Under the pieces are notes generated by a model that worked only from the letters and a program-made list of their open reading frames with translations, made no database searches and was not told the origin of the DNA. Below are positions 493-64,000 of a stretch of 64,000 nt of DNA, one piece after another (within the stretch, counting starts at the first letter, position 1; each line of letters begins with the position of its first letter). Made by a program: the position numbers and the translations under genes. Origin of the DNA: Lepidodermella squamata (Eukaryota; Animalia; Gastrotricha); contig JBLDXI010000057.1 in NCBI GenBank assembly GCA_047495785.1, positions 62,001 to 126,000 on the forward strand, given 5' to 3'.

Positions 493-1401
493 ATGTCTGA
501 CAACCCACCGCCGTCTTACAATGAGGTTATGGATGCCGTTCCGAAATCGAGGCTACCTAGAATCGACGAGATTCCGAGGAGTGAGGCAGGTGCTGCTAGC
601 CTCCGGGTTCATTTCGTGGCGATGCCTCCAGAGGTCGAAATGCCAGACGGACCGCTGATCGGCGGAACATGCCGAGAAGCCAACTCTGATCTCCTCGAAA
701 GTCACTATTTCGACGCATGTACGAGCTCATTCAACTGCCCTGCCCCACCCTCGACCGCCTACTCGCCTGTACCAGTTGCGAAAACTGAAGGATGTCGAAG
801 GGCGAGACGGCCTGTGTATTACTTCAGGCTTTTCCAAATTGTAAGTTGATTTGAAATTTCCAGTTAAATCCTAACATAAAAGATTGTTTAATCTAGTTGT
901 TAACTGTGGGGAATTTTTGTTTCCTGGTCATCTCTTTCAACATCACCCAGTCACGAATCTGTTCGGATTGGGTTTCGATCGTTTTCGCTGTCATCCTGAT
1001 TGGAGCTATCATCTTTTCTTTCTACCAGTTCTACAATGCATCGCCAATAGTGTACTCCATACCGGTAAAGATCCCCTGAAATTCCTCATTCATTAATTCA
1101 TTTCTTTTTTCAATTTTAAAGGAAAGTATTTTGCTTGTCATCCACTTATCGATGGCTATTTACTACTTTTGGTTGATTGCCTACTACGACTGGATCGTCA
1201 TGTCACTCGATTCTAGCTGCCATTATTTGACAATTTCTATAATGGTAAATTTCTAAAACGATGATTCAAAGAGAATGGCTCAATTTTTCTTTCCAACAGA
1301 CAATGTCTACGCTTGCTTTCAGTTGTTATATAGCCACGGGAACATGCCTTCTATGGCTAATAGATCGGTTCAGGAATCAGCGATCAGCAAACCTTCAATG
1401 A
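493..1401 (+). CDS. PPxY/4TM family gene L1 (exons 493-840, 897-1064, 1122-1244, 1300-1401)
   Basis: N-terminus MSDNPPPSY; three phase-0 GT-AG introns of 55-57 nt; four hydrophobic segments; terminal exon contains YIATGT. Confidence 0.85.
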
Positions 1402-1580
1402 TCAAGATTCAATACAAATCATCCTCTGCCTTAGTAGTTGGAAGTATTTTCCTTATCTTAATCATTTTCCTTCAGTCACTCAGTGACCATTCGGACTCCT
1501 TTCCAATAAAACCTTGATATTGGCTGACGAATCGATGCGATTTATTGCTGCTTTTTAGAGCTTTTAAGACAATTTCTGTT

Positions 1581-2350
1581 ATGGGCGAAGAGCTTCCGCC
1601 GAGTTACAAAGATGTGGTGGACAATTACCCTGAATTCCAGAGTCGATTACCGCCCGTGAACCAAGTGTCAAGCGATAGTGGATCGGGCCTTCTAAGGGTT
1701 CAATACGACCCACCCAGGTACTCGACTTCACCGCAAGGACAAGCTCAGCAGTGGTCAAACTATCCTCGGCTGTTCGTGGCATTACCCACCGTATCTGGAT
1801 TCAACCAAGCTTTAATACTCGATGATCAAGTTAAAAAATTGGCCATCAGACGATTTAGGACTGTTCAATCTGTAAGTTGAGGCTAAACTTGAAACATTTC
1901 CTATAATGAATTCTCTCACAACAGTATTGCATCATGATCTTCTACATTTTCTTCGGCCTCATACTCAATAGCTTAGATTGTTGGAAAAATGACCGAATCG
2001 GATTCGCTTATGGCTTGATCCTTCTATTCAGCTTTTTCTATCATATGATTCAACGTCAGCTAAATTCCACGATCTCCTACTCAGCAATGGTAAATTTAGA
2101 TTCCCATAATTTTTGCGAAAATTCATCGTCAATTGCACAGGATACGGTTTTGCTTGTGATACACACTGGAATGTTTTTTTACTGTTTTGGACTCGTGATC
2201 GAGTATAATTACTCACCGCGGACTTCGGAGAAGTACTGCTACGAAGCAACTGTCTTCGCGTTGGCTCTGTCTATCATGAGTACTATCTGGTACATCCCAA
2301 CAGGAACTAACTGCTTGCGTGTTTTACATAAAATTCATGATAATCTGTGA
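1581..2350 (+). CDS. PPxY/4TM family gene L2 (exons 1581-1871, 1925-2089, 2141-2350)
   Basis: MGEELPPSY; two introns, the family's third intron is absent; ends YIPTGTNCLRVLHKIHDNL*. Confidence 0.85.
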
Positions 2351-2466
2351 AGCTTACATAAAATGATCTCAAACCGGTTCATTATCTAGCTTATTTCTAA
2401 TGAAATTTAGGCTTGATTTATTATGCATTGAACGGATTTTGGGGTTGATCGAAATTGTTCAGTTTG

Positions 2467-3312
2467 ATGGAGGAAGATCCCGACCAGTTGCCTCCGTCAT
2501 ACTCGGAATTCTTATCCGTTCTACCTACTGCTCAAAATCGCCTGCCACGCGTTAACGATGTCTCGAGTGAAGATGGTCCCGGTCAACTCAAAGTTAGCTA
2601 TGATGCATTGAGGCCAGTCTCGTCTCCTTCCTGCAATGCCGAGGAGCCAACAGCTGAGCTGTACGTTCTCGACGAATGGGAGCCAAATCTCGTCATCGTG
2701 TCTTCCGGTTCTGATGATTTCGAAGAAATGGCTCGGCTTGAAAAAGCTCGGAAGATGCGAATAATCAGATACCGCAACACGCAAGCGGTAAGAAATTTGA
2801 TGAAATTGTAAATTTTTTCAAATTTTTAAATTTTATAGCTATTTTCTATTGCAAATTTTGTTGTTTTCCTGTGCATTCTTCAAATGATCGGCTGTTGGCG
2901 GGTGAACAAAATCGGCAATGCCTACGGATTTGTGGTTGTCTTTTGCTTCTTCTACCACATGTTTCAGCGTCAACTCGGTTGTGAAATTGTCTATTCAGTT
3001 GTTGTAAGCATGATTTATATCCTGTTCAACCTCATTTTTAAGAGACATGCTGTGTTCTAAGGATACTCTTTTAATGATGGTCCACTGCTCCATGGCTGGC
3101 TTCTGTCTCAATCAAATCTACAATTCAGACTCAGCAAAAGCTACCGGTTGCTTGGAAGCAACAATTACTGCTACAGTTAGTAAATTCCTCAATTTCAGGA
3201 TATGAATGATTCATTGATCTGATAGGTACTAGCTTTGGTCAACGCAGCCGTATTTATCCCGACTGGAACCCGATGCTTACCATTTATCCACACGCTCCAT
3301 GACAATCTCTAA
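2467..3312 (+). CDS. PPxY/4TM family gene L3 (exons 2467-2787, 2839-3003, 3062-3175, 3226-3312)
   Basis: MEEDPDQLPPSY; spliced frame is open; ends FIPTGTRCLPFIHTLHDNL*, a close paralogue of L2. Confidence 0.85.
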
Positions 3313-3415
3313 AATCTCATGAATCTAAAACCGTTTTATTTTCTGCAATGATACTCGATGAGCAATACAAAATCAATATTTATTTGCTTAATGATTTTAG
3401 GAATTGATAAAACGA

Positions 3416-4083
3416 ATGAGTAACGAACAAGTCCCCAGTTATGAAGCAGTCATCTCTGGGGATCATAATGACGCAACAAGAGCCCGCGCTTGTGATCGAG
3501 GGCTTAAATCGCTTTCCGACGATCAATCTAAACGCTTTCGGCTGACCCAAGCGGTTAGACTTGAAATCATTCCGAAATTCACTACAAACTTACATGTTTT
3601 GCAGGCCTTCTCTATGTTCAACATGTTTCTATTTGTCTTCGTCATAAATATGTGGGACTGTTGGCGCCGGCGAAAACTTGCGATCGCCTACAATCTACTG
3701 CTTGTCGTGTGCTGTTGTTACAACATGTTTCAATGGAAATGGAACTGCAAGCTATCCTTCTCCTATATGGTACGAATCGCCTCCTTTTTGGACCTGGTTT
3801 AATTTGCTTATTGATTAGGACACATTTCTGCTACTCGCCCATGGTGCTATGAACGTTTGCTGCCAATATTTGACTTATTGTTTCTTAATAACTACGAAGA
3901 CAAGCCTTTCGGACGGATGCCTTGAAGCTAGCCTAGCGGCTCTGGTAATTTTGACCTCAAAATGATTGTTGCTAATTAGTAATGCCTTGGTAATAGGTGC
4001 TATCTGCGTTACATTCTTTGCTGTACCTTCCAACTGGAACGAAATGGACTCCTTTCCCGAAATTACTCCACCAAATTGTGTGA
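3416..4083 (+). CDS. PPxY/4TM family gene L4 (exons 3416-3553, 3605-3769, 3819-3944, 3997-4083)
   Basis: MSNEQVPSY (variant motif); same intron positions; YLPTGT. Confidence 0.8.
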
Positions 4084-4523
4084 TCCCAATATGTTCTTTC
4101 ATGACTCATTACAACTAAACTTGAAAGCAATAAAATCGTATTTTTTAGCCTTCAGAGTGGAATATACCTCTGCGCCGTGTTTGTCCGCGATAAATAGCGG
4201 GCATGTTGTACTTGGCCGTATCAAATCGGTAATATTTTGACCCAGCGGCGTATCATCGTCGAGTGGTAATTTGTAATTTCTATGTAGAAGCGGCTAGTAG
4301 GTGGTAAACAGGAAGCGGCCCTCTAAGTATTTGCTGGCTTGCTACTCTCTTGGTTTACAATGTGCTATTTGAGGGGCTATTGTCCACACAGAGGAGGATA
4401 CGTGAAGATGCCGCCGAGTGTAAACACATCCATTAGCGCACCTGTATCATCGTCTAATAATACCTACCCTTCGCAGCTTGTTATTCCGATTTTACCTGGT
4501 ATATAGTTGAGAAATAGCCTGCA

Positions 4524-5269
4524 ATGGCTGAGGAAGCTACGATAAAGCCGATCGTGATCGACGAGCCGGCTCCGTCGAACACCGGGGCCGTCAGCCTGAT
4601 TCCGAATGAAAACATCGAAGTTTACAGCGAGGAAAATAGCGCTAAGAAAAAGCTCAACATCAAATACAAAATTTACTCGGGCATGATGCTTCGATACAGA
4701 ATCTGCATTTTGGTAAGCCTCATTTCTGTATTGACGACCCTAACTGGTTGTTTCATAAGGCTATAAATGTTACCATCATTGGATTGATTGGAGCAAGACT
4801 AGGTCTTCAATTGTTGGGTTATTGCGATTTCTACTTCGAAATCCCGCCTCGGATCGCTGGCTGTATACTGGCCATATTAGTGGGTATCGCAGTTTGGAAC
4901 GTGACGCGAGGCGACCCATTCACATATTCAGCAGTTGTAAGTTATTTGTTAGATACATTGCTGTACTCTATCTATTTTTGGGGTGAAGGATACGGTTTCT
5001 ATCGCGTGCCTTTTGGTCATCGCTGTTCCGGCTTGCTATTGGCCGTACTTCGACCAGGCAACTTGCAAGAAGGAAAAATGCTTCTACCTCGTTCCAACGA
5101 TCACGGTATTTTCAATTTGAGAAACAGTTTGAATATTTAGTGTTTGTTTCCTATTCAGATTATCTCACTCATGGCCGCATTCTGGCATCTGCCACATGGA
5201 ACGTGTATCATGCCGCTACTTCGACGTTCGTGCGTTAGGAAGACAGCTGACTCAGGGAACAGTGCATAA
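4524..5269 (+). CDS. 4TM family gene L5, lacks PPxY (exons 4524-4712, 4760-4936, 4989-5105, 5159-5269)
   Basis: Same three phase-0 introns; exon 3 starts DT; HLPHGT motif. Confidence 0.8.
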
Positions 5270-5643
5270 TTTTGAAACGCATGAACAATCAGAGCGCATT
5301 CGTAAAATTCTAATAAAACACCAAGCATATATTTTATCGGTTTCGTCGATTCTTTCTTCTTTCGATTTATCATTTATCAACCTTGTGCGATTTAATGCTT
5401 CTCGCAAATGTACTGCGATATACAAAAATATAGGCTATAAATATATTATTTCAGCACGATCCATTCACAGTATAGTTATTATTACGAAAGTGCACAGCCT
5501 AATATTCGATATATGCTATAGTAATATTACGAATACTACACACTCGTAGTATGCGGCATGTAAATGCATGCAGATGAAGGCTTTTATGCATCTGAAAGCT
5601 GACTAGAAACATTGTTGATTCACAGTGATATCAGTATGCTATC

Positions 5644-6518
5644 ATGACTGAATCGCCGCCTTCTTACCGAGAAGTGTTACTGGCGATCCCGGACACTGAC
5701 CAGAGGCGCCTGCCCGAGGTTAATCCAGTAGGTCATCATCAGCCGCAAATTCAGCGCGATAATGGCGTCTACATCGCCCATTCGAGGCCAGGGCCACTCA
5801 ATTTAGGCTTCCAGCCGGTCCATGACAACACGCAGCCGCCTGTTTCTTCAGATAATTTACCAGAAATTATTGCAGCTAGGAAAACATGTCATCAGTACAG
5901 AGTTGTTCTTCTGGTGAGTTAACCTCTCCCTTGTGGTGAATTTAATATTTTTTTGCTCATCGATTTAGGTCGCACATTTTATGACAATTAGTTTGTCATC
6001 AACGATATCCCTATTCGGACTTACCGGATTTTGTTACCACCCTCTTGCCTTCTTGCTGCTGGCTTGCGCTCTATTACTAGCACTGGTCCTCATCTACTCC
6101 TTCTTTCAGATTCGCACAATGGACTCCTCGTTATTTTACATCCAGGTAAAAATATCGAAAGAATCATTCTTCATAAAAGCTTAACGTGTCCAATTCTAAC
6201 ACAGGACAGTATTACTCTTTTAATTCTCGTTTTGATATTCATAATATGCTCGTCTTTTGTGGCTCTTGAAGCATACAAATCTGGATTCTGCAGATATTTT
6301 CTCGTGGCAACAATTGTAAGTAGAAATATAGGCACTTCAGCTCGTTTACTCCTGTAATCATGTAGATGACGGCTTTAATCACCGCCGCTATGCACGTGGT
6401 GACGGGAACCTATCTTATATCTTGCATTCGGCAAAGGATGGTTGGCAACGTTGGACCCAGGCTGCGGGTGATACGAGAGATGAGAATGGCTGACAGATTT
6501 CTCCACGAACCGCGATGA
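5644..6518 (+). CDS. PPxY/4TM family gene L6 (exons 5644-5913, 5969-6145, 6205-6315, 6366-6518)
   Basis: MTESPPSY; HVVTGT; recent paralogue of L7. Confidence 0.85.
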
Positions 6519-7452
6519 CCCGTGGCAGGGAGACCCAAGACAAAACTCATGTCATCCAAGTGACACACTAAGGGACACATCTAAACTTCGGTAATTAAAA
6601 GCCAATTTATATACCGATGATACTTTCCATGTATGCAACGCTTTATTCTTCAATCTCGCTCCTCAACAATTGAAAATGTTGCTAAATTCACTGCCTCACG
6701 CGACAGTTTCAAAAACAGCAAAAACAAATAAAAAACCCCGCTCATTGGTTGGGACAGAGCACCGAGCCTCATTAATTCCTGACTATCTTGGCACTGTCAG
6801 ACGATGCTCTTTGCTGTCAAGGAAGCTAATATTCGTCTTAGCTTTGGATGAGGCAGATTACTCTTCGAAACGATTAATATTGTGCGATGGTTTAATGACT
6901 TCACCCATCTCGGAGGTGATACTCCACTAAATCGCTCATAAAATTTCTAATGAGTATGACTGATGAAAATACTCTGTTATTTACTTGTGCTTTCTCCTGA
7001 ATAGTGAAATAAAATGGACTTGAATCTCTCGAAATATGTCTATTACTATACTACAAAAATTCACTGAAGAAATGAGACCAAATAATGAAAAAGTGAAGAA
7101 CGGTTTGGCTTAAATTTTTCGATTTCATTTGACGCAATGTGCACGAATAATAGATTGAAGAAATGTACCCAAATGAAGCTAATTAAAAAATACGACAATG
7201 TGGCTTTATTTGATGACTTACACGTTGCGATTAGCTATATGCCTTAGCAGTTTTTTCAAATATGAATCGATACATTACCCATTTGAGATCACGAAAAAAT
7301 GAAAATGACCGGATTTTTGAGCGTGCATCCGATGCTTTGCTCATTGCTTAACGCAGTAATTATAGTATCTCTACATGCATATGAAGCTAAGCCTCCTTGA
7401 ATCGGTTCTACACAATTTTTTAAAACGTTTAGCTGCATATGGGGTTTGTGGA

Positions 7453-8311
7453 TTCGGAGCCTTCGGAGCCTTCGGAGCCACGAAGTTTGTGGATCGCAGA
7501 ACGGCAATAATGATGGCAAATGGATTGGTTTTCAGCCATTTGAACTACGGCGACATCACATTAGGCCAGGCAGCACCGACAAATCTGGCTAAACTTCAAT
7601 CGACACAAGACCGAGCCGTGCGTGCCATTTGCGGGGCGCATCCCTTGGCCGACCCTGAATCGTTGAGACGCCGTCTTGGTTGGGTCGACGTCAATCAAAA
7701 ACACTCCATTCACCTTGCTACTTTGATTTGGAGCTGCTTACACCATCAAGCACCAGTAGCGATGCAAACATTGTTCCGGCTAAACGAAACCAGTTCCTAC
7801 GATGTTCGCCGATCTGAACCAATGTTCAAACCAACTTTCAAAAAGTAACGCGGCACGCTAAGCTGGAGCTATCGCGGGCCGGACTGGTGGAACGTACTGC
7901 CGACCGAAGCTCATCGAGCAGCATCGGCCAAGGAATGCCGCGAAGCTGTGTACAATCATTGTTACTCTACCAATGCTGGGAAATTAAAGTTAATAAAAAT
8001 TAGCGAAGGCCTTGTTCTGGCTATGCTTGAGATGAGATATAAAATGCAATTTGTGATTTTATTTTTATATTTAATGTTTGATGTGCTGATTTTTACTGCG
8101 CTGCGATTTTGTTGTTATGTTGTTTGTTGAGTTTGACATTATCAAACATCAAACTGATCTATAACTTTGTTTCTCTCCTACTACACCTTTCCTGTCCTAA
8201 ATCTGAATTTGTCCTGCAATTATATGTTGTTTTCCTTAAAATTGTCAAGCTGCCCACTCTTGGGCGTATGAGCTTCAAAATAAATAAATAAAATAAATAA
8301 ATAAATATAAA
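7453..8311 (+). mobile_element. 5'-truncated non-LTR retrotransposon (CR1/L2 group) ORF2 C-terminus with 3' UTR and (TAAA)n tail
   Basis: LVFSHLNYG...KLQSTQDRAVRAI...SYRGPDWWNVLP is a typical post-RT region; in-frame TAA at 7846; TAAA repeats at 8278-8311. Confidence 0.8.
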
Positions 8312-8450
8312 ATGACGGATTACAAGCTGCTTCTCAACAAATTCAACATGGTATCGCTGGAAAACAGGCGTTGTCAACGTGACTTATCTCTTATGTTCAA
8401 ACTATATAGAAGCTTCATTGATGCTGAATTCGAGACGTTTTTTAAAAGAT
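8312..8450 (+). mobile_element. Short fragment of a different LINE ORF2 C-terminus
   Basis: YKLLLNKFNMVSLENRRCQRDLSLMFK resembles the L..RR...DL...FK motif of CR1/Jockey-group ORF2 ends. Confidence 0.5.
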
Positions 8451-8994
8451 CCTTTGGCAGATCCGGCTCCGCTTCGGCATCGACTTGGATGGCTTACTGT
8501 CAACCAGAAACATGCGGTACACCTATGCACATTCATATGGAAGAGCTCCACGTGATGGCGCCGGACGACTTCAAGTCGATGTTCAAGCTGAACGATCGCA
8601 GCCATGGCTTTAACTGTCGCAATTTCGAGCCAATGCTCAGACCAACCTTCACTACCGAGCGTGGCCAACTGAGTCTGTCTTACAGAGGCCCACATTTGTC
8701 GTTCACGACGCGCAGTCTGCAAAGGCGTGCCGCGGAGCTGCCTACGCACATGTTTACGCCAGGAAAGCCACACAACCATAGTCAATATATATATTTTGTA
8801 TTTTTGCTCAATTTGTTGTGTCTGATTCTGTTGTTTGTTGTTGGATTTTCTACAATCTACTTTCGAATATTTAATGTCATCTGATTTGTCCTATACCTCT
8901 GCACCCTGTCGTACAATTATATGTTTCTCTTTCATTCAACTTGCTAAGCTGCCCTCTTCTGTGCGATATGGCTTCTAAATAAATAAATAATAAA
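8451..8994 (+). mobile_element. Second, diverged, frameshifted copy of the CR1/L2-group LINE 3' end
   Basis: PLADPAPLRHRLGWLTVNQKH aligns with PLADPESLRRRLGWVDVNQKH of the first copy; SYRGP motif; similar 3' UTR; TAAA tail at 8976-8994. Confidence 0.75.
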
Positions 8995-9335
8995 TTATCT
9001 TTACCTATGTGCCATCGTGACTGCCATAAATTTTCCTTCAATCGCCGATTTATTAATTGGTGGAATAGCCTACCATATGATGTTGTTGCTGGTTCAATTT
9101 ATAATTTCAAGAAATACGTTGCTAGCTTGGATAGAACAAAATTCTTAATTTCTACAGTGAGACGCCTTTAATTGCTACCGATCGTTAGATCAATTGCAAG
9201 TCGAATTAAAATAAGGCAAGGACAAGAGGGTAGAGTTATTATGGTGAATAGGCAGTGGCTGGACTTTTTGTCTGCAAAGTCTGCTTACAAAACAATTGAT
9301 ATACCTTAATTATGATACATGAGTGCCTGCGCCTG

Positions 9336-9374
9336 ATGACAGATTTTCCTCCTTCTTACATCTTGACATCTTGA
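9336..9374 (+). pseudogene. 5' stub of an L8 paralogue (MTDFPPSYILTS*)
   Basis: About 130 bp upstream and the first 8 codons match the L8 region (11995-12148), then similarity ends. Confidence 0.7.
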
Positions 9375-10110
9375 GCATCTGCTTCGAGACCAGCGAAATG
9401 TTCAGATTTACGAATTCTCTGATTCCCGCTCATTGATTGAATCAAAAGCACTTGAGCCTCAACAATTTCTGGCTTCTGGCTTCAGCTTGGCGTTGCTCCT
9501 TGCTGTCAAAGAGCAAAGAGCTCAAATGCGTCTTGTCTTCCGTATGAGACAGATTATTTTGGACAAAGCAATGTAAAAAAACGCGGAGATGATAAAATTG
9601 GAAGCGATTAATAATGTGCTATGGGAACCAAAAAATGACCCATTCACATCTCTGTTCGGCGATAGCCCACTGAAATGCTCAGACGATTTCTAATGAGTAT
9701 AATTGATGAAAATGCTCTGCGACGGCACAGGCAACAGCGGATAATTTTAAAACGGATGAAAAATACAAGGATTCGTAAAATTCGAATAACACACCGATTT
9801 CAACTTGATAGTTTTCATCGGTTCCGTCGTCGAATAATCAACTTCGCGCGATTTAAAGCTTCTCGCAAATGAACTGCAATATTATACACAAATATATAGG
9901 TAATGAATATATTATTTCAGCACGATCCATTCATAGTATAGTTATTACGAAAGTGCACAGCCATATATTCGATATATACGCTGTAGTAATATTACAAATA
10001 CTACACACTCGTAGTATGCAGCATGTAAATGCATGCAGATGAAGGCTTTTCTGCCTCTGAAAGCTGCCCATACAAATATCGTTGCTTCACACTGATATCA
10101 ATGTGCTATC

Positions 10111-10946
10111 ATGACTGAATCGCCGCCTTCTTACCGAGAAGTGTTATTGGCGATCCCGGATACTGACCAGAGGCGCCTGCCCGAGGTTAACCCTACACCT
10201 CATCATCAACCGCAAATTCACCACGATAATGACGTCTACATTGTCCATTCGACTTCAGGGCCGCTGAATTTAGGCTTCCAACCCGTCCATGACAACTCGC
10301 AGCCGCCTGTATCCCCGGATCATTTACCAGAAATGATAGCAGCTAGGAGAAAATGCCATCAGTACAGGGTCATGCTTCTGGTGAGTTGAACTCTCCCTCT
10401 GTGGTGAACTGTGAACTTAACATTTTGCTGATCAATTTAGGTCGCCCATTTTATGACAGTCGGTTTGGCATTAACGGTATCCATATTCGGAGCTTTAGGG
10501 TTTTGTTTCCACCCTCTTGTCTTCTTGCTGATGGCTTGCGCTCTATTACTAGCACTGGTCCTCATCTACTCCTTCTTTCAGATTCGCATAATGGATACCT
10601 CGTTATTCTACATTCAGGTTTGAATTTTGGCAGAATCATCATCTCATCAAATTTAACCTTAACAGGACAGTATTACCCTCGTAATGCTGGTTGTGATATT
10701 CCTAATATGCTCGTCTTTCGTGGCTCTTGAGGCCTACAAATCAGGACTCTGCAGATATTTGCTCATCGCAACGATTGTAAGTAGAAGTAGCTACTTCGGC
10801 TCGTTTCTTGTTAACCCTGTTGTTTCTAGACGGCGGCTTTCATCACCGCGGCTATGCACTTGGTGACTGGAACTTGTCTAATATCTAGCATACGACAAAG
10901 GATGGTTGGTAACGTTCGAGCCAGACTGCGGGTGATACCCCATTAA
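10111..10946 (+). CDS. PPxY/4TM family gene L7 (exons 10111-10380, 10441-10617, 10666-10776, 10830-10946)
   Basis: First 29 aa identical to L6; HLVTGT; ends LRVIPH*. Confidence 0.85.
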
Positions 10947-11067
10947 AACGCTGCGACAGTTTCTCATGAGTACAACTGATAAAAATTCTTTATAACTTGC
11001 TTGGGCTTTCAATTGAAAAATGAAATAAATTCAACTTGAATCTCTCCAAATTTGTGTACCTTATTTA

Positions 11068-11678
11068 CCGTATTTCTCGAAAATATACGACACACCTGTA
11101 TATATCCCCGCTCCCTAATACAACCCGACGAAAAAATCGTTTGTTCATATTTAACCCAGGCCTCGAAATTGTACCACAGCTATTTTAATTTGGGCGAAGC
11201 ATGCGTTGGAACAAAAGAAAAGCCTTATTAATGACGCATTATCGTAATCAGTGATTAGCTATCGCGTAAGCAGCTTCGCAACGTCTGATCTTGGCACCAT
11301 TCATAAGCCAGCAGAAAATGCCCATTCAGCATTCACTAGCTGAGACACAGAGTTTTATTTTAACATTTTCATATCCTTCTTAATCGTTTTAACCTTCTGG
11401 AATCGATGATGGCTGGCTCTCCTGATCGTCTTCAAGATTCCGTCCAGGTGTCCGAAGAAGACAAGCGAAAGCGGCACCGCAAGTATTCCCTCGCATTTTC
11501 ACTGAATCGACAAATAAAACAATCTAAAAACGTCGTCTTAATACGAATTGCTCGCGGCTTTTTGTGATGATTCGCAATTAAACAGCACACCCGTATATAT
11601 CCCCACTCCCTAATACAACCCGAATCAAAAATCATTTGTTCATAAATATAGCCCGCGGTAAATTTTCGAGAAATACGG
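11068..11678. mobile_element. Non-autonomous Tc1/mariner-superfamily (Tc2/pogo-like) MITE
   Basis: TIR CCGTATTTCTCGAAAAT ... ATTTTCGAGAAATACGG; TA on both sides; subterminal direct repeats; empty site near 7045. Confidence 0.85.
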
Positions 11679-12125
11679 TAACTACAAAATTCACTGATGA
11701 AATGATATCAAATAAGCGATGATCATTTTTTCGATTTTATTTAGCACAAAATCTCAGATGAAGACATGTACCCGGAGGAAGCTCATGAAAAATACGATAG
11801 TGTGGCTTAATTTGATTACTTTCGCGTTGCGATGGCCATCCCCTATCAGTTTTTCAATTATGAATCGATAATTTGTTAAAAAGCATTACTTACACGTGAA
11901 AAAAGAAAGTGACCGAACGCCGTATTTTTGAGCGTACATCCGATGCCTTGCTCATAGCATGCATTGCTTGCTGTAGTAATCCTACTTCAAGCCATGGTAA
12001 GGACAAGAGGGTAGAGCCGCTCTGATGGTCAATAGACAGAGGCTGAGCTTTTTGTCTGGAAAATCTGCTTACATAACAATGGCTTGGGATTGATACCTTA
12101 ATTATGATACATCAGTGCGTGCCTA

Positions 12126-12780
12126 ATGACGGATTTTCCTCCTTCCTATGCTGAAGTTATATCGGAAACCTCCACATTGCAAGCCGAAATTGTTGCAGGA
12201 ACGAAGAGCCTTGCTGTTCGGAAACTTTTCTTTTTCTACAGGACATTTTTATTGGTAAGATTACTCTAACAATTTATTGTCAGATCGTTGTAACTTATCG
12301 CTAAACAGGCTGTTAATTTTGTTCTGATAATCCTCGCATTGCTCCAGTACCTTTTGGAGCTTGGAAACTGTTGCCAGGGCGAGGGACATGTTCTCAGCTT
12401 AGCCTTTGTTATTCTTCTTTCTTTAATCACTGTCCTATCCATAATAAGGCTGCTCAAAGCTGACCCAGTCGACTACTCGGTTGAGGTAAGTTATTCTATA
12501 GCCACGAGAAAAGGAAAAGGAGTTCGCTTTTTGCAGGACTCTATTAATTTGATCACTGTAATTGCAATGGCTGTGAACTTCTACCACTCGTATATCCAAT
12601 GTCACCTCGATACAAAAAATTGCGAAATTTACCAGCATAACACGGTAAGGAACTGAAAGGTAAACATTTAAATTGTAAATGCTGATAATTTTGCAACTAT
12701 AGGCGTTTGCACTCGCAGCTGTGATCTTAAACCTCCCTTCCGGCACTTCTTTAGCCAGTTACTTTGCGAACAAGTTTTGA
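12126..12780 (+). CDS. PPxY/4TM family gene L8 (exons 12126-12254, 12309-12485, 12537-12644, 12703-12780)
   Basis: MTDFPPSY; conserved introns; NLPSGT. Confidence 0.85.
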
Positions 12781-13047
12781 AATGGCAATTGGGCTCTTGT
12801 TTGAAAGTCATGCTACTATTCACGTTTATCTATCTTATCGTTGGCATTGAATGCGCCGATTAATAAGCAGCCGTAGTAATAGTGGCCGAGTGCTCATGCA
12901 ATAAAACAACATGCACTTGTAAAGCCTACATACGCCGTATATTTTATACGAGCACGAAAGCCTGGGCTTGTGCTCTGTTTTTTTCAAAATACTACGATTC
13001 ACTCTTTAAAAATTGTCAGAGGCTAATACAGAATTTGGCTTGTAACT

Positions 13048-13820
13048 ATGTCGGACGATCCTCCATCATACAGCGATGTTATAAATGCTACGAAAGCGCC
13101 TGGTAGACTACCAGCAATTAACAATGAGGACCCACATGAGCGAAGATTACTGATATTCGACCCTAACTTTGCCACAAGACTCCAAAATGGACCAACACCG
13201 TTCATCCGAGCCACGATTAGAAGACCTGAGCCGATCAATAAGCTCAACTTTCGCCATCCTATGTTTTTCTACAGATTCTCGATCATGGTAAAAGGGCCGT
13301 AGAGATAATTTCGAGGAATTTTTTAATGAATGATTTCCAGGCATTGAACTTTCCCATCGTCTTTCTCGCTTCATTGATGTTCAATCTGCAACGAACTGGG
13401 GTGTGTGGCCCTCATGCAGACTTGTGGCCACTCGTGCTGGCCGCAGCTCTTTGTCTATCGTCCATTGTTTCAACGCTTTTCATGTTCAAGTCAAGCAATC
13501 CGCTGAAATACAATGCATTGGACACCCTAACTATGTGCAATCTCGTCGCAATGGCCATCATCAATCTCGCTTATTGCTCTGAGAGGGACACATCTATCGG
13601 TAGTAATTTCATGGGAAGATGCAGTAGAAATGGCCCTGACAACTGCCGATCAATGTTAACAGCAAGCTTGGTGAGTGTCCCGTGTTTTTTCGTAGTCGAA
13701 CTTATTCTCGAATTTTTAACCCAGATTTTGTCTGTCATGTCGGCGAGTCTTCATTTGCCTGTTGGAAGTGGCGTGTTACGACTTTTCGACAGCAAAATAA
13801 CCGCTGAAACAAATCGCTAA
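13048..13820 (+). CDS. PPxY/4TM family gene L9 (exons 13048-13287, 13341-13670, 13725-13820)
   Basis: MSDDPPSY; the family's second intron is absent (YNAL-DTL is contiguous); HLPVGS. Confidence 0.85.
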
Positions 13821-14019
13821 TTGTTTGAATCTGAATCTTCTTCCGCTTTTATACGGAGAGTAAATTGATATTAAATGGCTTGACAATCAGATGTCCTCAA
13901 TTATTGCGTGAAATAGAGATGTAACTCAAGACTCATCAAACACATGTAGTCTCGCCCTAATGGCAGCAATAATGTTGGCCTGCGGTTTCACACCCAGATA
14001 AAACAGAAAACTATGTAGT

Positions 14020-14672
14020 ATGGCGCAATCAAGAGGTATGGCGCAAGTGCGATCCAGCAATATCAATGATTATGAAGATGGTCAGCATGGGAACAAGATT
14101 TCATGGTTCAGCAGACACAGACTTGAATGTCTCTCAATGGAAGAAAGTACTTGGGACAGCAAATGTTTCTTTATCCGGCTTTTTCTCCTGGTAAGATTCT
14201 TTCATCCTAGATCATAGCCCATGGACTAATATGAAATGGTTTCAAGATGGGAGATTCCCTCGTTGTTACCCTGGCAGTAGCCGAATTCGTTCTGCAATGG
14301 GTCAAGCGTTGCGGTGAGGAAGTTGATCTATTGCCTTTAATTTTCTCGGCAGTCCTCAGTGTTTTCATTCTATACTCTGGAATTTGTTTATCTCGATCGG
14401 ACGGCATAGCAATCACGATTTCAGTTTACGTTTTACTCATCATCGTGATCTCTAACAAATGAATTTACTTATAGGATGTTGCCCGAGGCGTCGTAGTAGC
14501 TCTCATCGCTGCTCTCCACGTGGTGACTTGCGGCTCTACAGAAGTACAGTGTGAAGCTAATGGCGATGGCTACTGCAAAACACTGCTTTCGTCCAGCTTA
14601 TTCACCGCAATTTTTGTTGCCATCGTACATTGCCCGGTTTGTATTCTCGGATGTAATGTTCGGAATCGTTGA
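14020..14672 (+). CDS. 4TM family gene L10, lacks PPxY, chimeric C-terminus (exons 14020-14190, 14247-14423, 14475-14672)
   Basis: Four hydrophobic segments; HCPV is followed by CILGCNVRNR* encoded by the duplicated DUF4419 flank. Confidence 0.7.
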
Positions 14673-14812
14673 AAAAATTGAAATAAAACTTCCTGCAGAA
14701 TCATGTTTATTGAGACGAAAATTATAGCATCAGCCAATCTCAAAGAAAATCAAGTAGATATATCACCGGAGTTTGATTGCAAGAAAGGTTCTGATGTATT
14801 AAAATATTCGCG

Positions 14813-15802
14813 TTACTTCTTCTCGATAAAAATTGCCCGCGAGAAATCCGGGACCAGAAAATCTCTTTTGTCAAGCCTGGATGAGAATAGCCCGTGATGA
14901 ACAACGTAGTGGTCCTCCAACTCACCGCCAGCTCCAATGACGTGCCATTCAACGCTTGTGATCTGACCCCTTAGATCATACGGCGAACAGCGTTGTTGCC
15001 GATTGCACAGCTCAATCAACCAGCCAACGTACTGCGGATGCCCAGAGCCACAATGGATATCCTTGAACATGCCTGTCCAGAAATCAGAATCGAGTTCGCC
15101 TGATTTTACCTGACCGAGGATGATTCGGCATAGCTCATTGCAACGAGCAATGTAGCTCTTCATGCTAGCGTCAGGTAAGAGCTTTTCCCATTCTGTTAGG
15201 GAAGTTTCGATACTGCTCCAATCTTGCTCATTACCCTCTAGCCGGACTTTCTTGAGACCGCATCGAGTCGTAAAGTAATCGTAATAAGGCGAAGCTGCCT
15301 CGGCAAAAGCCGCATATCTCGCCTCCCGTGCCATGGCGGAATCAGTCGAGAAATTCGGTAGCAGCTTTTCGACATTGGCCGGAACAAGCTTCTTAAGCGC
15401 CTCAATAACTCGCTCGAATTCAATGCACTTCGTGACGTCCTGGACTATGATGATTTTCTGCTTGTCAGGTTTAGTCGTGAAAATTTCGCGGCATTTTTCG
15501 GCATTTTTGACGACATACTGCGCGATTTCGGTGTAAACGCAGAAGTAGAACATGTCCGGCCTGAAAATGATTCCGGCGTGAGTAGCCCAGCATCGTTCGA
15601 TGTAAGAAGCCAGATTGTCGTGGTAGAGGTCAGCGTCTGCCGGGATAAGGTTTTCGTACAGCTTCCACTTGGCTCGACCTGTTTTGCCATGGAGGCTCTC
15701 GATGTGGTTCATCAACTCATCTTTCGCGCGCGTTGATTTACCTCCTTTAAGCCTGGTTAGGGCCTTGTCATCAAGCTGTGAGTTCAGCACAATTTCCAGC
15801 AT
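14813..15802 (-). CDS. DUF4419-family protein, intronless, copy 1
   Basis: Motifs H..I...PD, NAE..R..F, FST, YY.Y....CG...V.LEG...DW, FW, GSG....GW match DUF4419 as I recall the family. Confidence 0.8.
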   Translation of the reverse strand: MLEIVLNSQLDDKALTRLKGGKSTRAKDELMNHIESLHGKTGRAKWKLYENLIPADADLYHDNLASYIERCWATHAGIIFRPDMFYFCVYTEIAQYVVKNAEKCREIFTTKPDKQKIIIVQDVTKCIEFERVIEALKKLVPANVEKLLPNFSTDSAMAREARYAAFAEAASPYYDYFTTRCGLKKVRLEGNEQDWSSIETSLTEWEKLLPDASMKSYIARCNELCRIILGQVKSGELDSDFWTGMFKDIHCGSGHPQYVGWLIELCNRQQRCSPYDLRGQITSVEWHVIGAGGELEDHYVVHHGLFSSRLDKRDFLVPDFSRAIFIEKK

Positions 15803-15889
15803 GGCGGTAAAAATATTATAGAGAAATATACTTAAGCTATCGTACTAATGCTGTTTTTTATCAGCTTTTAAACGCGAGTTGTATGCTCA

Positions 15890-15910
15890 GCGATGAATCA
15901 TCGCCACGTG
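15890..15910. promoter_or_regulatory. Palindrome GCGATGAATCATCGC plus E-box CACGTG upstream of DUF4419 copy 1
   Basis: 7-1-7 inverted repeat about 90 nt upstream of the ATG; identical in copy 2 at 23441-23461 while flanking bases differ. Confidence 0.45.
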
Positions 15911-16699
15911 TGAATAAATAGCGCTGGCCAATAAGATTGATGAATAATAAATCAGGACAAAAAACTGCTATGCGGAATTTATTCAATCACATTTTTTTCA
16001 TACCAAAATCGGATATTTCGTCGAAAAGTGGAAAATCAACAAAAAAACGGATAAGGCTACATTTTATTTTTCTACTTTTCGGCCACCGGCAAGAAGTTTT
16101 GCCCACTTGTGTATAATTGTAATTGCGATAATAAATTTCCGCAATTTCGAATCTATTGAAAGCGTCGTTGAAAACACACTTCAACTCGTTTGTTTAGCGA
16201 TATGTTCGCATGTTGACCGTCCTGATTCTTGATTATGGCTAAGTAAACAAGTTTCGTGTGCGGAGAGAATCGTGAGATTTCAATCCGTATTAATGTCCAT
16301 GCAATTAGAAATTAAAGAAGGCGAAACTAAATGTGTTCTAAATCTTATTATACGTCTTATGGCTGTTGACTGTTATCTTTATCAAATATTAATTAGCCAT
16401 GGCTGGTGAGGTTAACTCGCGCAATGCGGCTCACACTTGATGGCCCAGTAAGTTAATGTTCACCGCGCGGCGGCTATTATACACGCACGAGTTCATAGCC
16501 GCTGTAGTGTGTAATGACTACTACGATCGCGTCGCCATTAACCTGTTTGCTCAAGACGCAGCGCGCGGTGCCTCTTGATGCGAAAAGGTAACGCTCGTTA
16601 GACGCTGAATACGCGACTACGTCAGAAAAGTTACGCTGACCACACGCATTACTATATACTTATATGTAGCCGGAATCTGGCAAATGAGTACATCGCGTA

Positions 16700-18007
16700 A
16701 TGCGGATAATGCTGCTTTTCGCAACGATAGTCCTCGTTTTCATTGAGTCAACTGCATCCACCTCAAATTTCACTGATTATTGCGATTTCTGCGAAAAGCA
16801 AGAATCGGCTTCCGATTATTTCCAACAAGCAGCAGGAATTTACAGGGATGATGCTGAAACCGCTATAGCTTTGCTACGAAAAGCTCTGGAAATCTACACT
16901 GCAAACAGGAAAGATCCGCGATATAGACAAACATTGCTGCCAGAAATTTTGAATGGGTTGCAATATACTCATTTTATTTTGAAAAATTACGAAGAATCTC
17001 TTGAGGCTGTTGAAATCGCCCTGCAGCAGCCTGAAATCACGAATGATCTCTATTGGGCGCAACATTTCATCGATCGAAAGCGGCTAATTCGGCAAGAAGC
17101 GATCCTCCACTACTTCTCAGTAATTCCATTGAGTCCATACCTGATTTATAATTGGTTTTCATCCGGCTATAGGAACTTGGCACGCATCAAAATTTGACTG
17201 AGGCCACTCTGATCGAGAAAGCCGAGCAGTTGGAAGATACTTCACTGTACCAACTATGTAAGCAATCAGTTGCTGATAAATTCAATGTTGTTTCATCTCT
17301 GACTTGTCGATTCGATACGCGTGGGAATCATCCTCTTTTCATTCTCTCACCGTTGAAAGAAGAAACTCTCAATATCGACCCGGTGTTAGTGATGATTCAC
17401 GATCTCGTGCTGCCGAAAGAGCAGCAAACATTAATTTCACTATCTCGGCTCAATTTAGAACCAGCAGCGACTCTTGTCCATGAAAACCGCTCGACAAAGG
17501 TGTCGTACAATGATCGGCATTCAGATGTTGCATGGCTACGGTCGAATCATGTCACTGGTTTGACGAACCGAATTCAAGCTGCCGTTCAGATGAATATCGA
17601 AGATGACAACGGAAGTGAGCTATACCAGGTAATATTTGTCCAAGTTAATCCGGTAAATAGTAATGAAAGTTGTTTAGGTTAGTCACTACGGCATTGGTGG
17701 CCATTTCGCTCCTCATCCCGACTACATGGAAGTCTCAGCTGAGCCTCATCTCGGTGACAGGATTGCCACTCTTCTCCTTTATTTGAATGATGTCGAGCAA
17801 GGAGGAGCAACTATTTTTACGTGGTTAAATCTGCGGGTTGAACCTGAGAAAGGCTCGGGCGTTTTCTGGTTCAATATGAACGCCAATGAAACCGGCGATG
17901 TGCGAACTTACCATGCTGGCTGTCCTGTGATACGAGGCGAAAAATGGGTGGCTAACAAATGGTTCCGTTACAGGGCGCAATTTCTTCACAAACCCTGCGC
18001 CAGATAA
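16700..18007 (+). CDS. P4HA: Prolyl 4-hydroxylase alpha-like (exons 16700-17119, 17173-17628, 17678-18007)
   Basis: Signal peptide; TPR-like region; YGIGGHFAPHPD, RIATLLLYLNDVEQGGAT, HAGCPV, KWVANKW catalytic motifs intact. Confidence 0.9.
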
Positions 18008-20445: not shown

Positions 20446-20879
20446 TGCAGAAAACTTAACTTTTAAATAGAGTTAAGGTGCCAAGTAGCTGAGTAAACTA
20501 TTACGCAGAATCCAGCACGGGCAATCACCGACAAGATTCAATTAGACAAATTTCGCCGTAACGTTACGTAGACATGTTTTTCTGCGCTTTATTACCCTCA
20601 ACTTTCATATCGGCATGAGCTCAATGCTCATTGGCATCGTTTCGCAACGCCCTATCCCCAGTAAGATGGAGAGCACTCGCAATCCCTTTACTCTTATGAT
20701 ATATGCTGAGGATTCTGAGAACTTGAACTGTAGCGTCGGCTAATTCAGCAGACATATCGCTAGCCGTTATTGTCGCTGAGCAATTCGGATTATGAGCTTG
20801 TTTACATCAATTTCAAGGTAATCTAACACGATTCCATACATATAACGCGCCAGCAGATAATTGCATTAGTGAAAGCTCA

Positions 20880-21171
20880 TAGACATCTTTCTCCAGTATT
20901 GCAACAAAAGTTTATTCAGCACTTGAATTCAAAACAGTGCCTTGCAATTATAATGAAGATCAGAGCTCGGTCAGCGTAGACATCTTTCTCCAGTATTGCA
21001 ACAAAAGTTTATTCAGCACTTGAATTCAAAACAGTGCCTTGCAATTATAATGAAGATCAGAGCTCGGTCAGCGTAGACATCTTTCTCCAGTATTGCAACA
21101 AAAGTTTATTCAGCACTTGAATTCAAAACAGTGCCTTGCAATTATAATGAAGATCAGAGCTCGGTCAGCGT
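20880..21171. repeat. Perfect 97-bp tandem repeat x3
   Basis: Unit TAGACATCTTTCTCCAG...GCTCGGTCAGCG starts at 20880, 20977 and 21074. Confidence 0.95.
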
Positions 21172-22523: not shown

Positions 22524-23364
22524 CAGTGCTCCCTCGTTAGTGGCACCCTCCTTAAAAGAACTCCCTCGTTAGTAGACCGTAATTTTCGAATGAAAATCAG
22601 ATCGCGCCTGAGAAGATACAAATTTATTCTATTCAATCTAAACATCCTCTTGTTCCCTTTTCCCTCTTGACCCACACTTGAACCACACGTCTTATGCCTT
22701 GAAATCGGTCCGTGATTGCTCAATGCCATTCGATGAATTTAAAAAAAGAAAAATACATTATTCATCACAATTGTTTCACATTTTATATTATTTAAAAAAA
22801 ATAAAAATCCAACGAATTTTAGGCGAAGCATGAGTTCTGGATTGAACACTGCAGCTTGAGAATGTTTGGCTGAATTTGTTGGTGATTTATTCAGAAGTAT
22901 TCTGGTCAAACTTGATTGGTGATTGATTCAAAAGGTGATTGATTTTTTAAGCTGCTATTTCAAATGAAATTTTTTTGCGAAATCGGACGAGCTGGGCATT
23001 TTTGGAGTAAATTGAAATAATGAGATTCCAGGTTTTTTTTATGCTGAGTTCGTTAACCCCAGGCAGGAATTGAAATCAGAGTAAAAAACAAGGCCAACCA
23101 GTCAAATCAAAGCCGCCCTGGCAAATAAGAATAAAAACTTAGCGACGAACTTATAATTCATAGTGTTACTGTTTCACAGCCTTCAGCGAGCGAAATTTGT
23201 AATCCGTGTCCGTCTCTTTCTGCGTGTTGGCATGCCAACTGTCTTAAGTCGTAGAAACGGTCTATTTTTAGCTTCTGCATTCAATTATAGCCCTCGTTAT
23301 AGCTTTACCTTGTTTAGAGACCGGGTCTGGCTCCCGACCCAGTGCTTTTATCGAGGGAGTAGTT
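22524..23364. mobile_element. Possible degenerate pogo/Tc1-type MITE
   Basis: Left end TA|CAGTGCTCCCTCGTTAG with an internal CTCCCTCGTTAGT repeat; only an imperfect inverted match at 23341-23364. Confidence 0.3.
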
Positions 23365-59608: not shown

Positions 59609-60531
59609 TCAGTTGGCGAGCACGAACCAGCAGCCACTGGGCAGGTAGGCGAGCACGAGGCCGAAACTGAGCACGGCACTGGCGAGCGAGTACTTGAAGC
59701 AGTCCATTTCGTCGAGGAAGTACGCGTTCACCACCAGGAAGCACGACATGATGAAATGGCTGATGTTGATTATTAGGCCAAAAGTGTCCTATTTTAAAAG
59801 AATTAATTTGAAAATAAAAAATTAAACAAATTAAAAAATAAAATAAAAATAAAAAAATATAATATTGATTTTTGTTTAAATCTTCATATAAACTTACCAG
59901 GCATATTGTGATGCGGGAATTTCGCACGGAACAAAACGGCCGAAGCGAGTAGGCGACGATGACGAAAGCCGATGGCACGATGAAGGTCGCCCACCGACCC
60001 GAGTGGCAATTGCCGTAAATTATTGACAGCATAATCAGGTAACTGAGCGCCAAAACCTTAAAATTGAAAAAAAATCAAAATATTAGCATTTTTGTCCCAA
60101 ACTAGGTCATTATTTGTCAACCTGATTTTCTAAAAAATTAGTTATTAATTGATTAGCAGTTTAACAAGTAAAGAATTGATAATTAATTCGAGACTCACGA
60201 ATGGAAGAATTTTTTGGCAGCAATGTCGATGTTTTTCTTCAGGTTGAAGCGATAGCCGGCGGAATGACAGCGTCGCGGCCGAGCAACGCCGGCTAGTTGT
60301 TACAACAGGCTCTTCACCCGGCGATAGTAGAATCACCGTACCAGCAGAAGGTTGCGCTGATGAATCATGGCCAAGCGCCAAATTGCCATTTTCGTCGTAG
60401 TGCGACGGTCTCAATGACGACGGGTCGTAGGGCGGCGGGGGTGATGAGCACGTCGGCCCACCTGATTCGCAGCTGTCTTCAGGTAGCAACGACTCAACAC
60501 TGCCAGTTGCATGGCCTGAATTCGAAGCCAT
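59609..60531 (-). CDS. PPxY/4TM family gene R1 (exons 60531-60199, 60056-59898, 59788-59609)
   Basis: PPPPY; exon 3 starts DT; YLPSG; third intron absent. Confidence 0.8.
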
Positions 60532-60858: not shown

Positions 60859-61657
60859 TCAGTTGTTTTGTTCGGCGTGAGACAGGTCAAGTTTGATTCT
60901 CTCGAAAGAGGAACGCATAAAATTGAGCAAATAAGTTGAAACCGGACACAGATAAATGACGGTGAGAATCGTGGACAGGGCCTAATATAGTTAAAAATTA
61001 ATCAAAATATATTTATATTTTTAATTTAAAAATATTTAAAAAAAATTAGCAATACCAGAATCGAGCTTTTCAGAGCCTCGGCTTTCTCGGATCCACTGGC
61101 ATAGCCGTGAGCCGAATTTCGCTTGAAGTGAGTATATCCGAAATCAACGGCAGTTGCAGCGTGAACGAACAACAAAAACATGTCCTGAATATTGAAAAAT
61201 TTAGAAAAAATATTTCAAAAATTTTCGACGCACTCCACGTTTGAAATTCGGGTCGATGAAGGCTTGGAAGAAGGCGACGATCAGTGCCCCGCCGATGAGT
61301 GATGAGAAAACTGCCGGTGAAGAAAACCAGCTGATTTCGCACGTCAAAAATAGCAGCATGAAAAATTCAGCGACGGTCAACGCCTGATAATTATTTCCGA
61401 ATTTAACAGCTTAAAAAATCGATGGCCGAACTCACAAACGGAATTAAACGCCACAGTGCTCGCATTTTTCGAGGAAAATCGGGTATAGGTAAAATATAGG
61501 TGTTGGGCGCATCTAACTCAATGCGGAGATCTTCAACAGCGTAACGAGCTGAAATTTTCGGAACTATTGCCGTAGTCGGAGATTCAGTCGGCTGTTGCGC
61601 GTCCGAAATTGTCAGCATAACGACGCTGTAACTAGGCGGCGCTGTTGGGTCTCTCAT
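60859..61657 (-). CDS. PPxY/4TM family gene R2 (exons 61657-61436, 61383-61234, 61184-61056, 60981-60859)
   Basis: MRDPTAPPSY; three phase-0 introns at family positions. Confidence 0.8.
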
Positions 61658-61746
61658 CGTCAACAAAACCTAGAGCTGAAATTTTCGATTTTTTTATATA
61701 GAAAAATAATGATGATAATATTAGATTTGCCGTCGTCTTGCAATAA

Positions 61747-62626
61747 TCACGCGAGTTCGACCTCGCGATGTTGTGACCTCGATAAAAAGCTAGTGAGCAA
61801 GAAAAAGTAGGTCATCACGAAGACAGACGACGCAATATTGCGGAAAAAGCGGGCGTGGAAAAATGTCGATGACGTCGACCACTGCTTGTTAAACATTTCC
61901 ACTTGGATGATGGTCATTTTGTATAAAATCGCCATAATTTTACAAAAATACACGCAAGTCGCAGAGAGGTAGATAACACTCAGGGCCGCCGATAAACCCT
62001 ACAAAAGTTCTGAAAATAATTGCGAAAAAAATAAAAAAATCTCAAAATTTACGAAAATCGTGGCCCTCAAGCCCTCGGCTAAATCGATTTGCGGCTTTTT
62101 CGGAGAATCCATGAACCGATGGCCATACATGATCGAAGCATGAATAAGGAGCAGAATTAAATCCGCAAATCTTGCGCTGCTGTCGATGACAATTTGAAAA
62201 ATGCAAACAGTTGCCGCAAAAATCGTGAGAAAAACGAATTCGGACAGCGTCAAACAACTGATTTTCATCGGAAATAGCGAAAAATAGCAAGCCGCTAAAA
62301 TCAGCAGCTGGAAGACAAGCTCGACAATAGTTATTGTCTGAAATAATGAAAACAATTATTTTTTCGCCGAATTATTTCCAACTAACCAACGGAATCAGTC
62401 GTAAATAAGCTCGATTCGTCATGTCGTAGTCGTATTTTTTCTTCGACGCTGTTTTTCGTTTTTTGCGTCTAGACGGTTCGAAGTCACATTTTAGGGCGTA
62501 GTTGTGGCCGCCAGTTAATTTGAAAAAATTCGAGTATTTAATTTTCGGAAAATCAATCTCATCTCTCGGCTTTGATTGATGAACGGCCAAGCTGAACTTT
62601 GATCTATCGTCATCTGAGAACATCAT
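61747..62626 (-). CDS. 4TM family gene R3, lacks PPxY (exons 62626-62387, 62337-62053, 61998-61747)
   Basis: RLIPL then intron, as in R2; second intron absent; extra hydrophobic C-terminal segment. Confidence 0.75.
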
Positions 62627-62749: not shown

Positions 62750-64000
62750 TCAGTGCTGAGCGAAAATTCGTTTGATAATGTTTATGAGACAAGTTCCAGT
62801 TGGGACGTAGAAAGATGTTAGAATTGTCGATAAAAGCTGCAGGAAAAAAATAATTAATTTCACAATTTTTGGCAGATTTCCAGAAAAATGCTCACCAATA
62901 CGGCGTTATAGACAGCGGTGGATGGGCCTCCGTTAGCAGGCGGACTGGTGTGGCCCTTTCCGACCTCCCTCAGAAATATGAGTAGGGCATAAGTGACGAG
63001 AGTTAGCAAAAATAGCAGAGCAGTGTCCTAAATTTAGGAAAAATTATCAAATAAATAATTAAAAAAAGCAAATTTCTCACGTATATTGTGTATTTAATTG
63101 GAGCGGCGTGTAGCAGCCGCGAGATCGAAACAAATGAGACGAGGATGAAAACGCAAGTTGATATCAGCGAAACGAATTTGGTCTCACCATTGAATACCAG
63201 CAAGCAAAAGATGGCGAAAGACAGCAGCTAAAATAGGGAAAAACGGTAGATAACAGATTTAAACAAAGAGGAGCCAAATGCTAACCCTAAATTCGGGGCT
63301 CAAGCTATAGATTTTTTCAATTTGGACTCTATACTAGTTTCGCGTCTTTACTAAAACCTGAATCCTAACTCGATAAATACTTCTGCCTCCAGATCTGATA
63401 TCGGTCCTACTATCGATTTTGGAAATCACTGATTTTTCTAATATCACGAACATTGGCACACAAAATGCAGTGCCAAAATGGAAAAATGGAACCTCAATTT
63501 TAGCGAAAATATGTTGACCTGATTAATAAATTAAATTGCGAATAATTCGAGCGATTTTATTAATTTTTTTCTTTTCAATCCAACTTTTTTTCTACGATTT
63601 TAATGAGCTCCTCAATAATTTGAAGATCGATTTTTCCTCGCTTTTTCCGATTTATTGCAATATTTTTTACGCTTTCATAAGCCTTGAATCATATTCGATT
63701 GATGAAAAGCAACAAACACAAGGTAGAGAGTGGTAGATGCCGATCGAGATTCGGGACATTTGCCGCATGTTCTCAACGCGGTGGTACTCAGTCGCGTACA
63801 AGTGGCACAGCGTCGGGTGGCTCGTAAATGACGTGTCTATTTCGGCGGCGGCGTCTCCGGCACGTGGCGGTTCAACCGTGTACGTATGCACGACAAGCTG
63901 CGGGTTACCAGGAGCTGCCGGGTGGTCGCTAGGCGGTAACAACCGGTTCTGAGCCGGTTGGACGCGCTGTGATCTCGTCGCCTGTAAAAACTCGGCATAA
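62750..64000 (-). CDS. 4TM family gene R4, start lies beyond the window (exons >64000-63718, 63227-63081, 63027-62896, 62836-62750)
   Basis: Frame open at the window edge (YAEFLQA, compare PPSYSEFL of L3); exon 3 starts DT; FYVPTGTCL; first donor tentative. Confidence 0.75.

Follow-up and report, generated by a model that had tools for sequence, protein, structure and literature searches.

Two clusters of genes for divergent PPxY-bearing tetraspan proteins in Lepidodermella squamata, possible adaptors of NEDD4-type ubiquitin ligases

Gene models and transcription of the two clusters

A 64-kb stretch of DNA from the gastrotrich Lepidodermella squamata (assembly GCA_047495785.1, contig JBLDXI010000057.1, positions 62,001 to 126,000), referred to as the window, was analyzed for a family of small membrane proteins with four transmembrane helices (TM1 to TM4) and a PPxY (PY) motif. 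The window is part of a compact animal genome, with introns of about 50-60 nt and a GC content of about 42-43%, which agrees with the 43% published for this species (PMC11660948). In total, 14 gene models coding for proteins of 163-258 amino acids (aa) were obtained. Ten of them (g01-g10) are arranged head to tail on the + strand (493-14672) and four (g11-g14) are located on the - strand (59609-64000), where the last one, g14, is truncated by the window edge. Count, coordinates and architecture thus agree with the original prediction, made from the letters alone, of 10 genes in the first array and 14 in the window. A six-frame search revealed no additional members in the window, apart from a short relic of a g08 5′ end. 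The models are listed below; the RLP box is the motif RLP-x-(I/V)-(N/D).

493..1401 (+): g01, exons 493-840, 897-1064, 1122-1244, 1300-1401; 246 aa; PPSY at 6, RLP box; 3/3 introns in cDNA
1581..2350 (+): g02, exons 1581-1871, 1925-2089, 2141-2350; 221 aa; PPSY, RLP box, second PPxY at 44; lacks intron 3; 2/2 introns in cDNA; source of the folded open reading frame (ORF) 1925-2347
2467..3312 (+): g03, exons 2467-2787, 2839-3003, 3062-3175, 3226-3312; 228 aa; PPSY, RLP box; 3/3 introns in cDNA
3416..4083 (+): g04, exons 3416-3553, 3605-3769, 3819-3944, 3997-4083; 171 aa; non-canonical VPSY; two joints in cDNA plus loose ends over intron 1
4524..5269 (+): g05, exons 4524-4712, 4760-4936, 4989-5105, 5159-5269; 197 aa; no PY motif, lysine-rich tail; 3/3 introns in cDNA
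5644..6518 (+): g06, exons 5644-5913, 5969-6145, 6205-6315, 6366-6518; 236 aa; PPSY, RLP box; intron 2 in cDNA
9336..9374 (+), approximate: g08 5′ relic with start codon, PPSY and early stop, within the duplicated block 9215-9358; from self-blastn (79% to 11996-12148) and translation
10111..10946 (+): g07, exons 10111-10380, 10441-10617, 10666-10776, 10830-10946; 224 aa; recent duplicate of g06 (78% aa); model from sequence
12126..12780 (+): g08, exons 12126-12254, 12309-12485, 12537-12644, 12703-12780; 163 aa; PPSY, short tail; model from sequence
13048..13820 (+): g09, exons 13048-13287, 13341-13670, 13725-13820; 221 aa; PPSY, RLP box; lacks intron 2; model from sequence
14020..14672 (+): g10, exons 14020-14190, 14247-14423, 14475-14672; 181 aa; no PY motif; lacks intron 3, intron 2 donor weak; model from sequence
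59609..60531 (-): g11, exons 60531-60199, 60056-59898, 59788-59609; 223 aa; PPPY at 32; lacks intron 3; 18 bits in the leave-one-out search
60859..61657 (-): g12, exons 61657-61436, 61383-61234, 61184-61056, 60981-60859; 207 aa; PPSY; no loop-2 Cys
61747..62626 (-): g13, exons 62626-62387, 62337-62053, 61998-61747; 258 aa; no PY motif, lysine-rich tail; start codon uncertain; most divergent member
62750..64000 (-): g14, exons >63999-63718 (donor uncertain), 63227-63081, 63027-62896, 62836-62750; 5′ end beyond the window, begins at the Tyr aligned with PPSY; both loop Cys absent

Each of the 37 introns has GT-AG ends and, as had been proposed, phase 0, and together they occupy three homologous positions: early in TM1, directly ahead of the D/E that opens TM3, and within TM4. 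Most are 47-60 nt long, and five genes each lack one of the three.

Splicing was validated with run X1 (2015, contigs), which carries the SMART cDNA adapter among its loose ends. Its 14 listed splice joints all match model introns of g01-g06 exactly and none of the listed joints falls off the models, while a 15th junction, intron 1 of g04, shows up as loose ends; the final two introns of g06 are not among the X1 rows displayed. The cDNA splice evidence thus covers g01-g06, and g07-g14 rest on models from sequence. The DNA run X2 contained no splice joints. Between X1 and the window, 14 of the 17 coding differences are silent (ratio of replacement to silent polymorphism, pN/pS, 0.07; p ~1e-6), so that the polymorphism is strongly purifying. 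Because of the cDNA joints and the selection tests, an artefact or an array of pseudogenes was ruled out: the cluster consists of real, spliced and working genes.

The stop-to-start gaps within g01-g04 and g11-g14 are just 89-327 nt, an operon-like spacing. No spliced leader was present among the loose ends displayed for X1, and the listed cDNA pieces are each confined to one gene.

Protein architecture and family assignment

The paralogues are extremely divergent, as originally described, with pairwise identities of 10-38% in the membrane core, the exception being g06 and g07 (78%), which are located in a 1.2-kb segmental duplication. Nevertheless, a hidden Markov model (HMM) of the family recovered 13 of the 14 members in a leave-one-out search (18-91 bits; best shuffled score <=9). 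The member that failed, g13, is linked to the family only via g12 (30% identity, 97/94 support) and the common intron positions; its long C-tail (61747-61998, -), which differs from those of all other members, carries a fifth hydrophobic segment. An internal repeat of two by two helices, prompted by misaligned mixed exon alignments, was rejected (hhalign probability 0.5%).

According to the models, the proteins are small tetraspans with both termini in the cytosol, consisting of a disordered N-tail, four helices and a short amphipathic C-tail. AlphaFold, run on the ORF 1925-2347 with an exon-row alignment (A6), predicted a four-helix bundle with a short C-terminal helix (predicted local distance difference test, pLDDT, 80; predicted template modelling score 0.62), in accordance with the four hydrophobic helices first noticed. 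Since this ORF retains the in-frame intron 2 of g02, the model lacks the N-tail and has a 17-residue insert encoded by the intron. The fold from the single sequence was unusable (pLDDT 54).

The original prediction had described a set of motifs for the family, most of which hold for the majority of members. The Pro-rich N-tail of 39-112 aa starts with PPSY-x-x-(V/F), but a PPxY is present in 7 of the 10 genes of the first array and in 9 of the 13 complete genes; g04 has the non-canonical VPSY, and g05, g10 and g13 have none. The RLP box follows PPSY in six genes. The core comprises an aromatic-Arg pair ahead of TM1 and two loop cysteines, one in loop 1 (13/14) and one in loop 2 just ahead of TM4 (11/14), with g14 lacking both and g12 the second. 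The D/E that opens TM3 is found in all 14 genes. After TM4, the motif (Y/H)-(I/L/V)-P-x-G-T is common but not universal (P 10/13, G 10/13, T 9/13; g07 was omitted as a near-duplicate). The outer loops average 10 (loop 1) and 12 (loop 2) residues and are probably joined by one predicted disulfide.

Within the tail, the PPSY box is the best-conserved part, its P, S and Y forming invariant or near-invariant columns of the alignment. Among independent exon-1 peptides, 8 of 12 carry a PPxY, compared with a mean of 0.36 of 12 in exon-1 shuffles. The box is identical between g06 and g07, where codons 1-28, including PPSY and the RLP box, show four silent and no replacement changes. A shared motif can be explained by descent, but its retention at an overall identity of 10-38% requires selection.

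The databases were searched with single exons, exon alignments and two natural read-through ORFs (1925-2347 and 13341-13817, the latter keeping the in-frame intron 3 of g09). With these queries no match was obtained in Pfam, in PDB sequences, among 1.84 billion representatives or among 5.8 billion proteins, collections from which relatives may be missing. The best Pfam match, Acyl_transf_3 (E 4e-4, 20 bits against a cut-off of 31), was taken as one of hydrophobicity, and Commissureless reached a non-significant E of 0.06 on two exons. MARVEL (E up to 1-10) and CD20, the profile of MS4A and sarcospan, matched neither the exons nor the four-TM natural ORFs, whereby the HMMER filters drop weak matches; the PDB sequences gave no hit either, the PPSY in protein VI of adenovirus being matched at a non-significant E of 1.9. 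The ESM Atlas gave values all below 0.9 by features and nothing by shape, Foldseek returned nothing from the PDB and viral libraries, and metagenome contigs and phages contained no match.

The features of known tetraspan groups were not found either. There is no Mtp Pfam match, and the PY motifs are N-terminal with none in the C-tails, which differs from LAPTM proteins. Loop 2 is short and has no CCG motif, unlike the large second loop of tetraspanins with its 4-8 Cys, and the short loop 1, without a strand in the model, does not correspond to the long beta-rich loop 1 of claudin, PMP22 and TMEM127 with its W-GLW-C-C motif. One conserved Cys per short loop is also not the pattern of innexins, pannexins or connexins, whose two long outer loops have two or three conserved Cys each. 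Judged by sequence, with single exons and natural ORFs as search queries, the family could be assigned to none of MARVEL, MS4A, LAPTM, tetraspanin, claudin or innexin. TMEM272-like proteins, a candidate origin with four helices, one Cys per short outer loop and, in invertebrate members, an N-terminal PPSY, were not returned by the profile searches with the same queries, and the literature searched yielded no functional study of them. As far as these searches reach, the view of an unrecognised, lineage-restricted family stands, and the proteins appear to be PY-motif tetraspans of an expanded family without earlier description.

Possible role in the recruitment of ubiquitin ligases

Of all features, the PY box points most strongly to a function, and all steps from it toward that function are inferred. 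A hallmark of NEDD4-family adaptors, a PPxY conserved on the cytosolic side within a Pro-rich tail, is present in 9 of the 13 complete genes. PPSY probably binds the WW domains of NEDD4-family HECT ligases, which is favoured by its x residue and context: the three commonest x residues of NEDD4 interactors include Ser, and a Pro-rich disordered context is typical of them (PMC8509885). Given such binding, the chances are somewhat in favour of the proteins acting as adaptors like TMEM127, LAPTM4 and NDFIP. Since PPSY docks NEDD4-type ligases elsewhere, it is probable that the proteins direct either themselves or other membrane proteins associated with them to degradation. Taken as a whole, the reading as membrane adaptors for NEDD4-type ligases is put forward tentatively. 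In such a mechanism, the PPSY tail would recruit the ligase via its WW domains, the divergent helices of each paralogue would contact membrane clients, and the ligase brought to these clients would cause their ubiquitination, endocytosis and lysosomal sorting. The lysine-poor tail would limit the adaptor's own ubiquitination, and the PY-less paralogues would be non-recruiting or differently regulated versions. A classical ectodomain is unlikely, because the outer loops are too small.

By analogy, the family would work most like TMEM127 and LAPTM or like occludin. TMEM127, which recruits a NEDD4-family ligase to other membrane proteins, likewise has four helices, two cytosolic termini and a single PPxY bound by a WW-HECT ligase (PMC7342019). 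However, its motif lies at the extreme C-terminus and not at the N-terminus, no sequence similarity was detected, and the family is an expansion of 14 genes. LAPTM4A, LAPTM4B and LAPTM5 are small multipass proteins bound by Nedd4 for lysosomal sorting via PY motifs which overlap tyrosine-based sorting motifs (PMC3214061), but these motifs are multiple and C-terminal. The herpesvirus protein pUL56, a lysine-free and reusable NEDD4 adaptor, also bears PPxY in a lysine-poor cytosolic tail (PMC7539533); it is tail-anchored with three PPxY, whereas the present proteins are host-encoded, four-pass and keep few lysines.

By analogy with the lysine-free pUL56, lysine-poor tails favour an adaptor. Lysine makes up 17 of 686 residues (2.5%) in whole PY tails versus 4.7% in the window proteins (p 0.002), which is the fair figure; in the distal tails, defined by our own choice of excluding the last 20 tail residues, 5 lysines were observed against 16 expected from base composition. 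The PY-less tails contain 22 lysines in 230 residues. The adaptor half of the original prediction thus gains indirect support from the conserved PPSY box, its invariance in g06/g07 and these tails, while in about one third of the paralogues a canonical PY is missing. Several observations speak against it. The lysine contrast between tails with and without PY is mostly driven by g05 and g13. Every PY paralogue keeps one or two lysines within 16 residues of TM1, and since the PY tails are lysine-poor and not lysine-free, the proteins could be plain substrates. Most have one PY motif (g02 has two), versus several in LAPTM and UL56 adaptors. The four complete genes without canonical PY are intact, and g04 and g05 are spliced in cDNA, so that the membrane domain has a role without ligase docking. 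Moreover, PPxY is also bound by WW proteins that are not ligases.

The best of the rival explanations is somewhat less probable than the adaptor reading: the proteins would have a fold of the MARVEL, sarcospan or MS4A type and, although highly divergent, would organise membranes or serve as accessory subunits at junctions, vesicles or microdomains, with the PY motif controlling only their own turnover. Such a substrate is favoured by the single PY motif, by the lysines retained next to the membrane and by the intactness of the PY-less paralogues. A precedent is the MARVEL tetraspan occludin, which carries a PPxY at its N-terminus and is itself a target of Itch (PMC10577960). Neither MARVEL nor CD20 matched the exons and natural ORFs. 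In contrast to occludin, synaptophysin and synaptogyrin, the loops are much shorter and the coiled-coil C-terminal domain of occludin is absent; in contrast to sarcospan and MS4A, there is a single Cys per loop and no loop-2 pair.

The diversifying receptors of the original prediction fared worse. A chemoreceptor or ligand-sensing family like the mouse MS4A necklace receptors, with desensitisation driven by NEDD4, is improbable: the outer loops are minute and the polymorphism is purifying. In the g06/g07 pair, the ratio of non-synonymous to synonymous substitution rates (dN/dS) is 0.36 overall and lower in the pooled outer loops (0.39) than in the helices (0.58), giving no support for positive selection on the loops, although the loop sample is small and the loop 1 figure comes from about 7 changes. 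An MS4A sequence signal is also missing in the searches with exons and natural ORFs, and reports of MS4A genes are confined to jawed vertebrates, with invertebrates reported to have none (PMC2826416).

Least probable are NEDD4-down-regulated subunits of oligomeric large-pore or small-solute channels with pannexin, innexin, connexin or CALHM topology, since the structural matches (root-mean-square deviation 3.1-6) cover less than half of most target chains, no Pfam match was obtained, and the loops of about 10-12 residues with one conserved Cys each are far below the long outer loops of innexins, pannexins and connexins.

Neighbouring features and significance

The region separating the two tetraspan clusters contains, on the - strand, six or more related genes that resemble class C G-protein-coupled receptors and mostly have no introns; they might conceivably be clients. 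These and the other features of the window are:

18133-20472, 38810-41209, 43757-46219, 46763-49102, 51790-54267, 54772-57186 (-): class C receptor-like genes, with ANF_receptor and a weak 7tm_3 for the first
7375-8995, between g06 and g07: ORF fragments, by eye like decayed 3′ ends of non-LTR (long terminal repeat) retroelements; one fragment tested had no Pfam match
14640-15986 / 23363-24718: inverted duplication (91% identity) that includes a pair of intact DUF4419 genes without introns (Pfam E 9e-33) as well as the final codons of g10
16688-18004 (+): prolyl-4-hydroxylase-alpha-like gene (by eye)
20880-21171: 97-bp unit in three perfect head-to-tail copies, real or an assembly feature
25055-25672 (-): ankyrin-repeat gene
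27237-29495 (+): single-exon secreted protein with a LamG/concanavalin domain joined to a trypsin domain
30727-32319 and 42128-42815 (+): two Cys-loop receptor-like genes, the ligand-binding domain being Pfam-confirmed for the second
57529-58056 (-): Kunitz-domain gene

If the proteins are organisers, they would add to the tetraspan organisers a new branch of extreme divergence, from an animal phylum that has barely been sampled; this would be a useful annotation but a less surprising one. Few membrane adaptors of NEDD4 ligases are known, and their copy numbers are low. As adaptors, the 14 members, which keep the docking motif and the helix core while the rest has diverged to an identity of about 15%, would lend themselves to a comparative study of client choice and might offer compact scaffolds for the targeted degradation of membrane proteins. 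It is conceivable, though rather unlikely, that they constitute a repertoire of multipass NEDD4 adaptors which is host-encoded and arose independently, each paralogue choosing different clients inside the bilayer. If so, they would form, together with any further PPxY arrays of this genome, a diversified code for the degradation of surface proteins, of a kind so far mainly described from viral adaptors and single-copy vertebrate genes.

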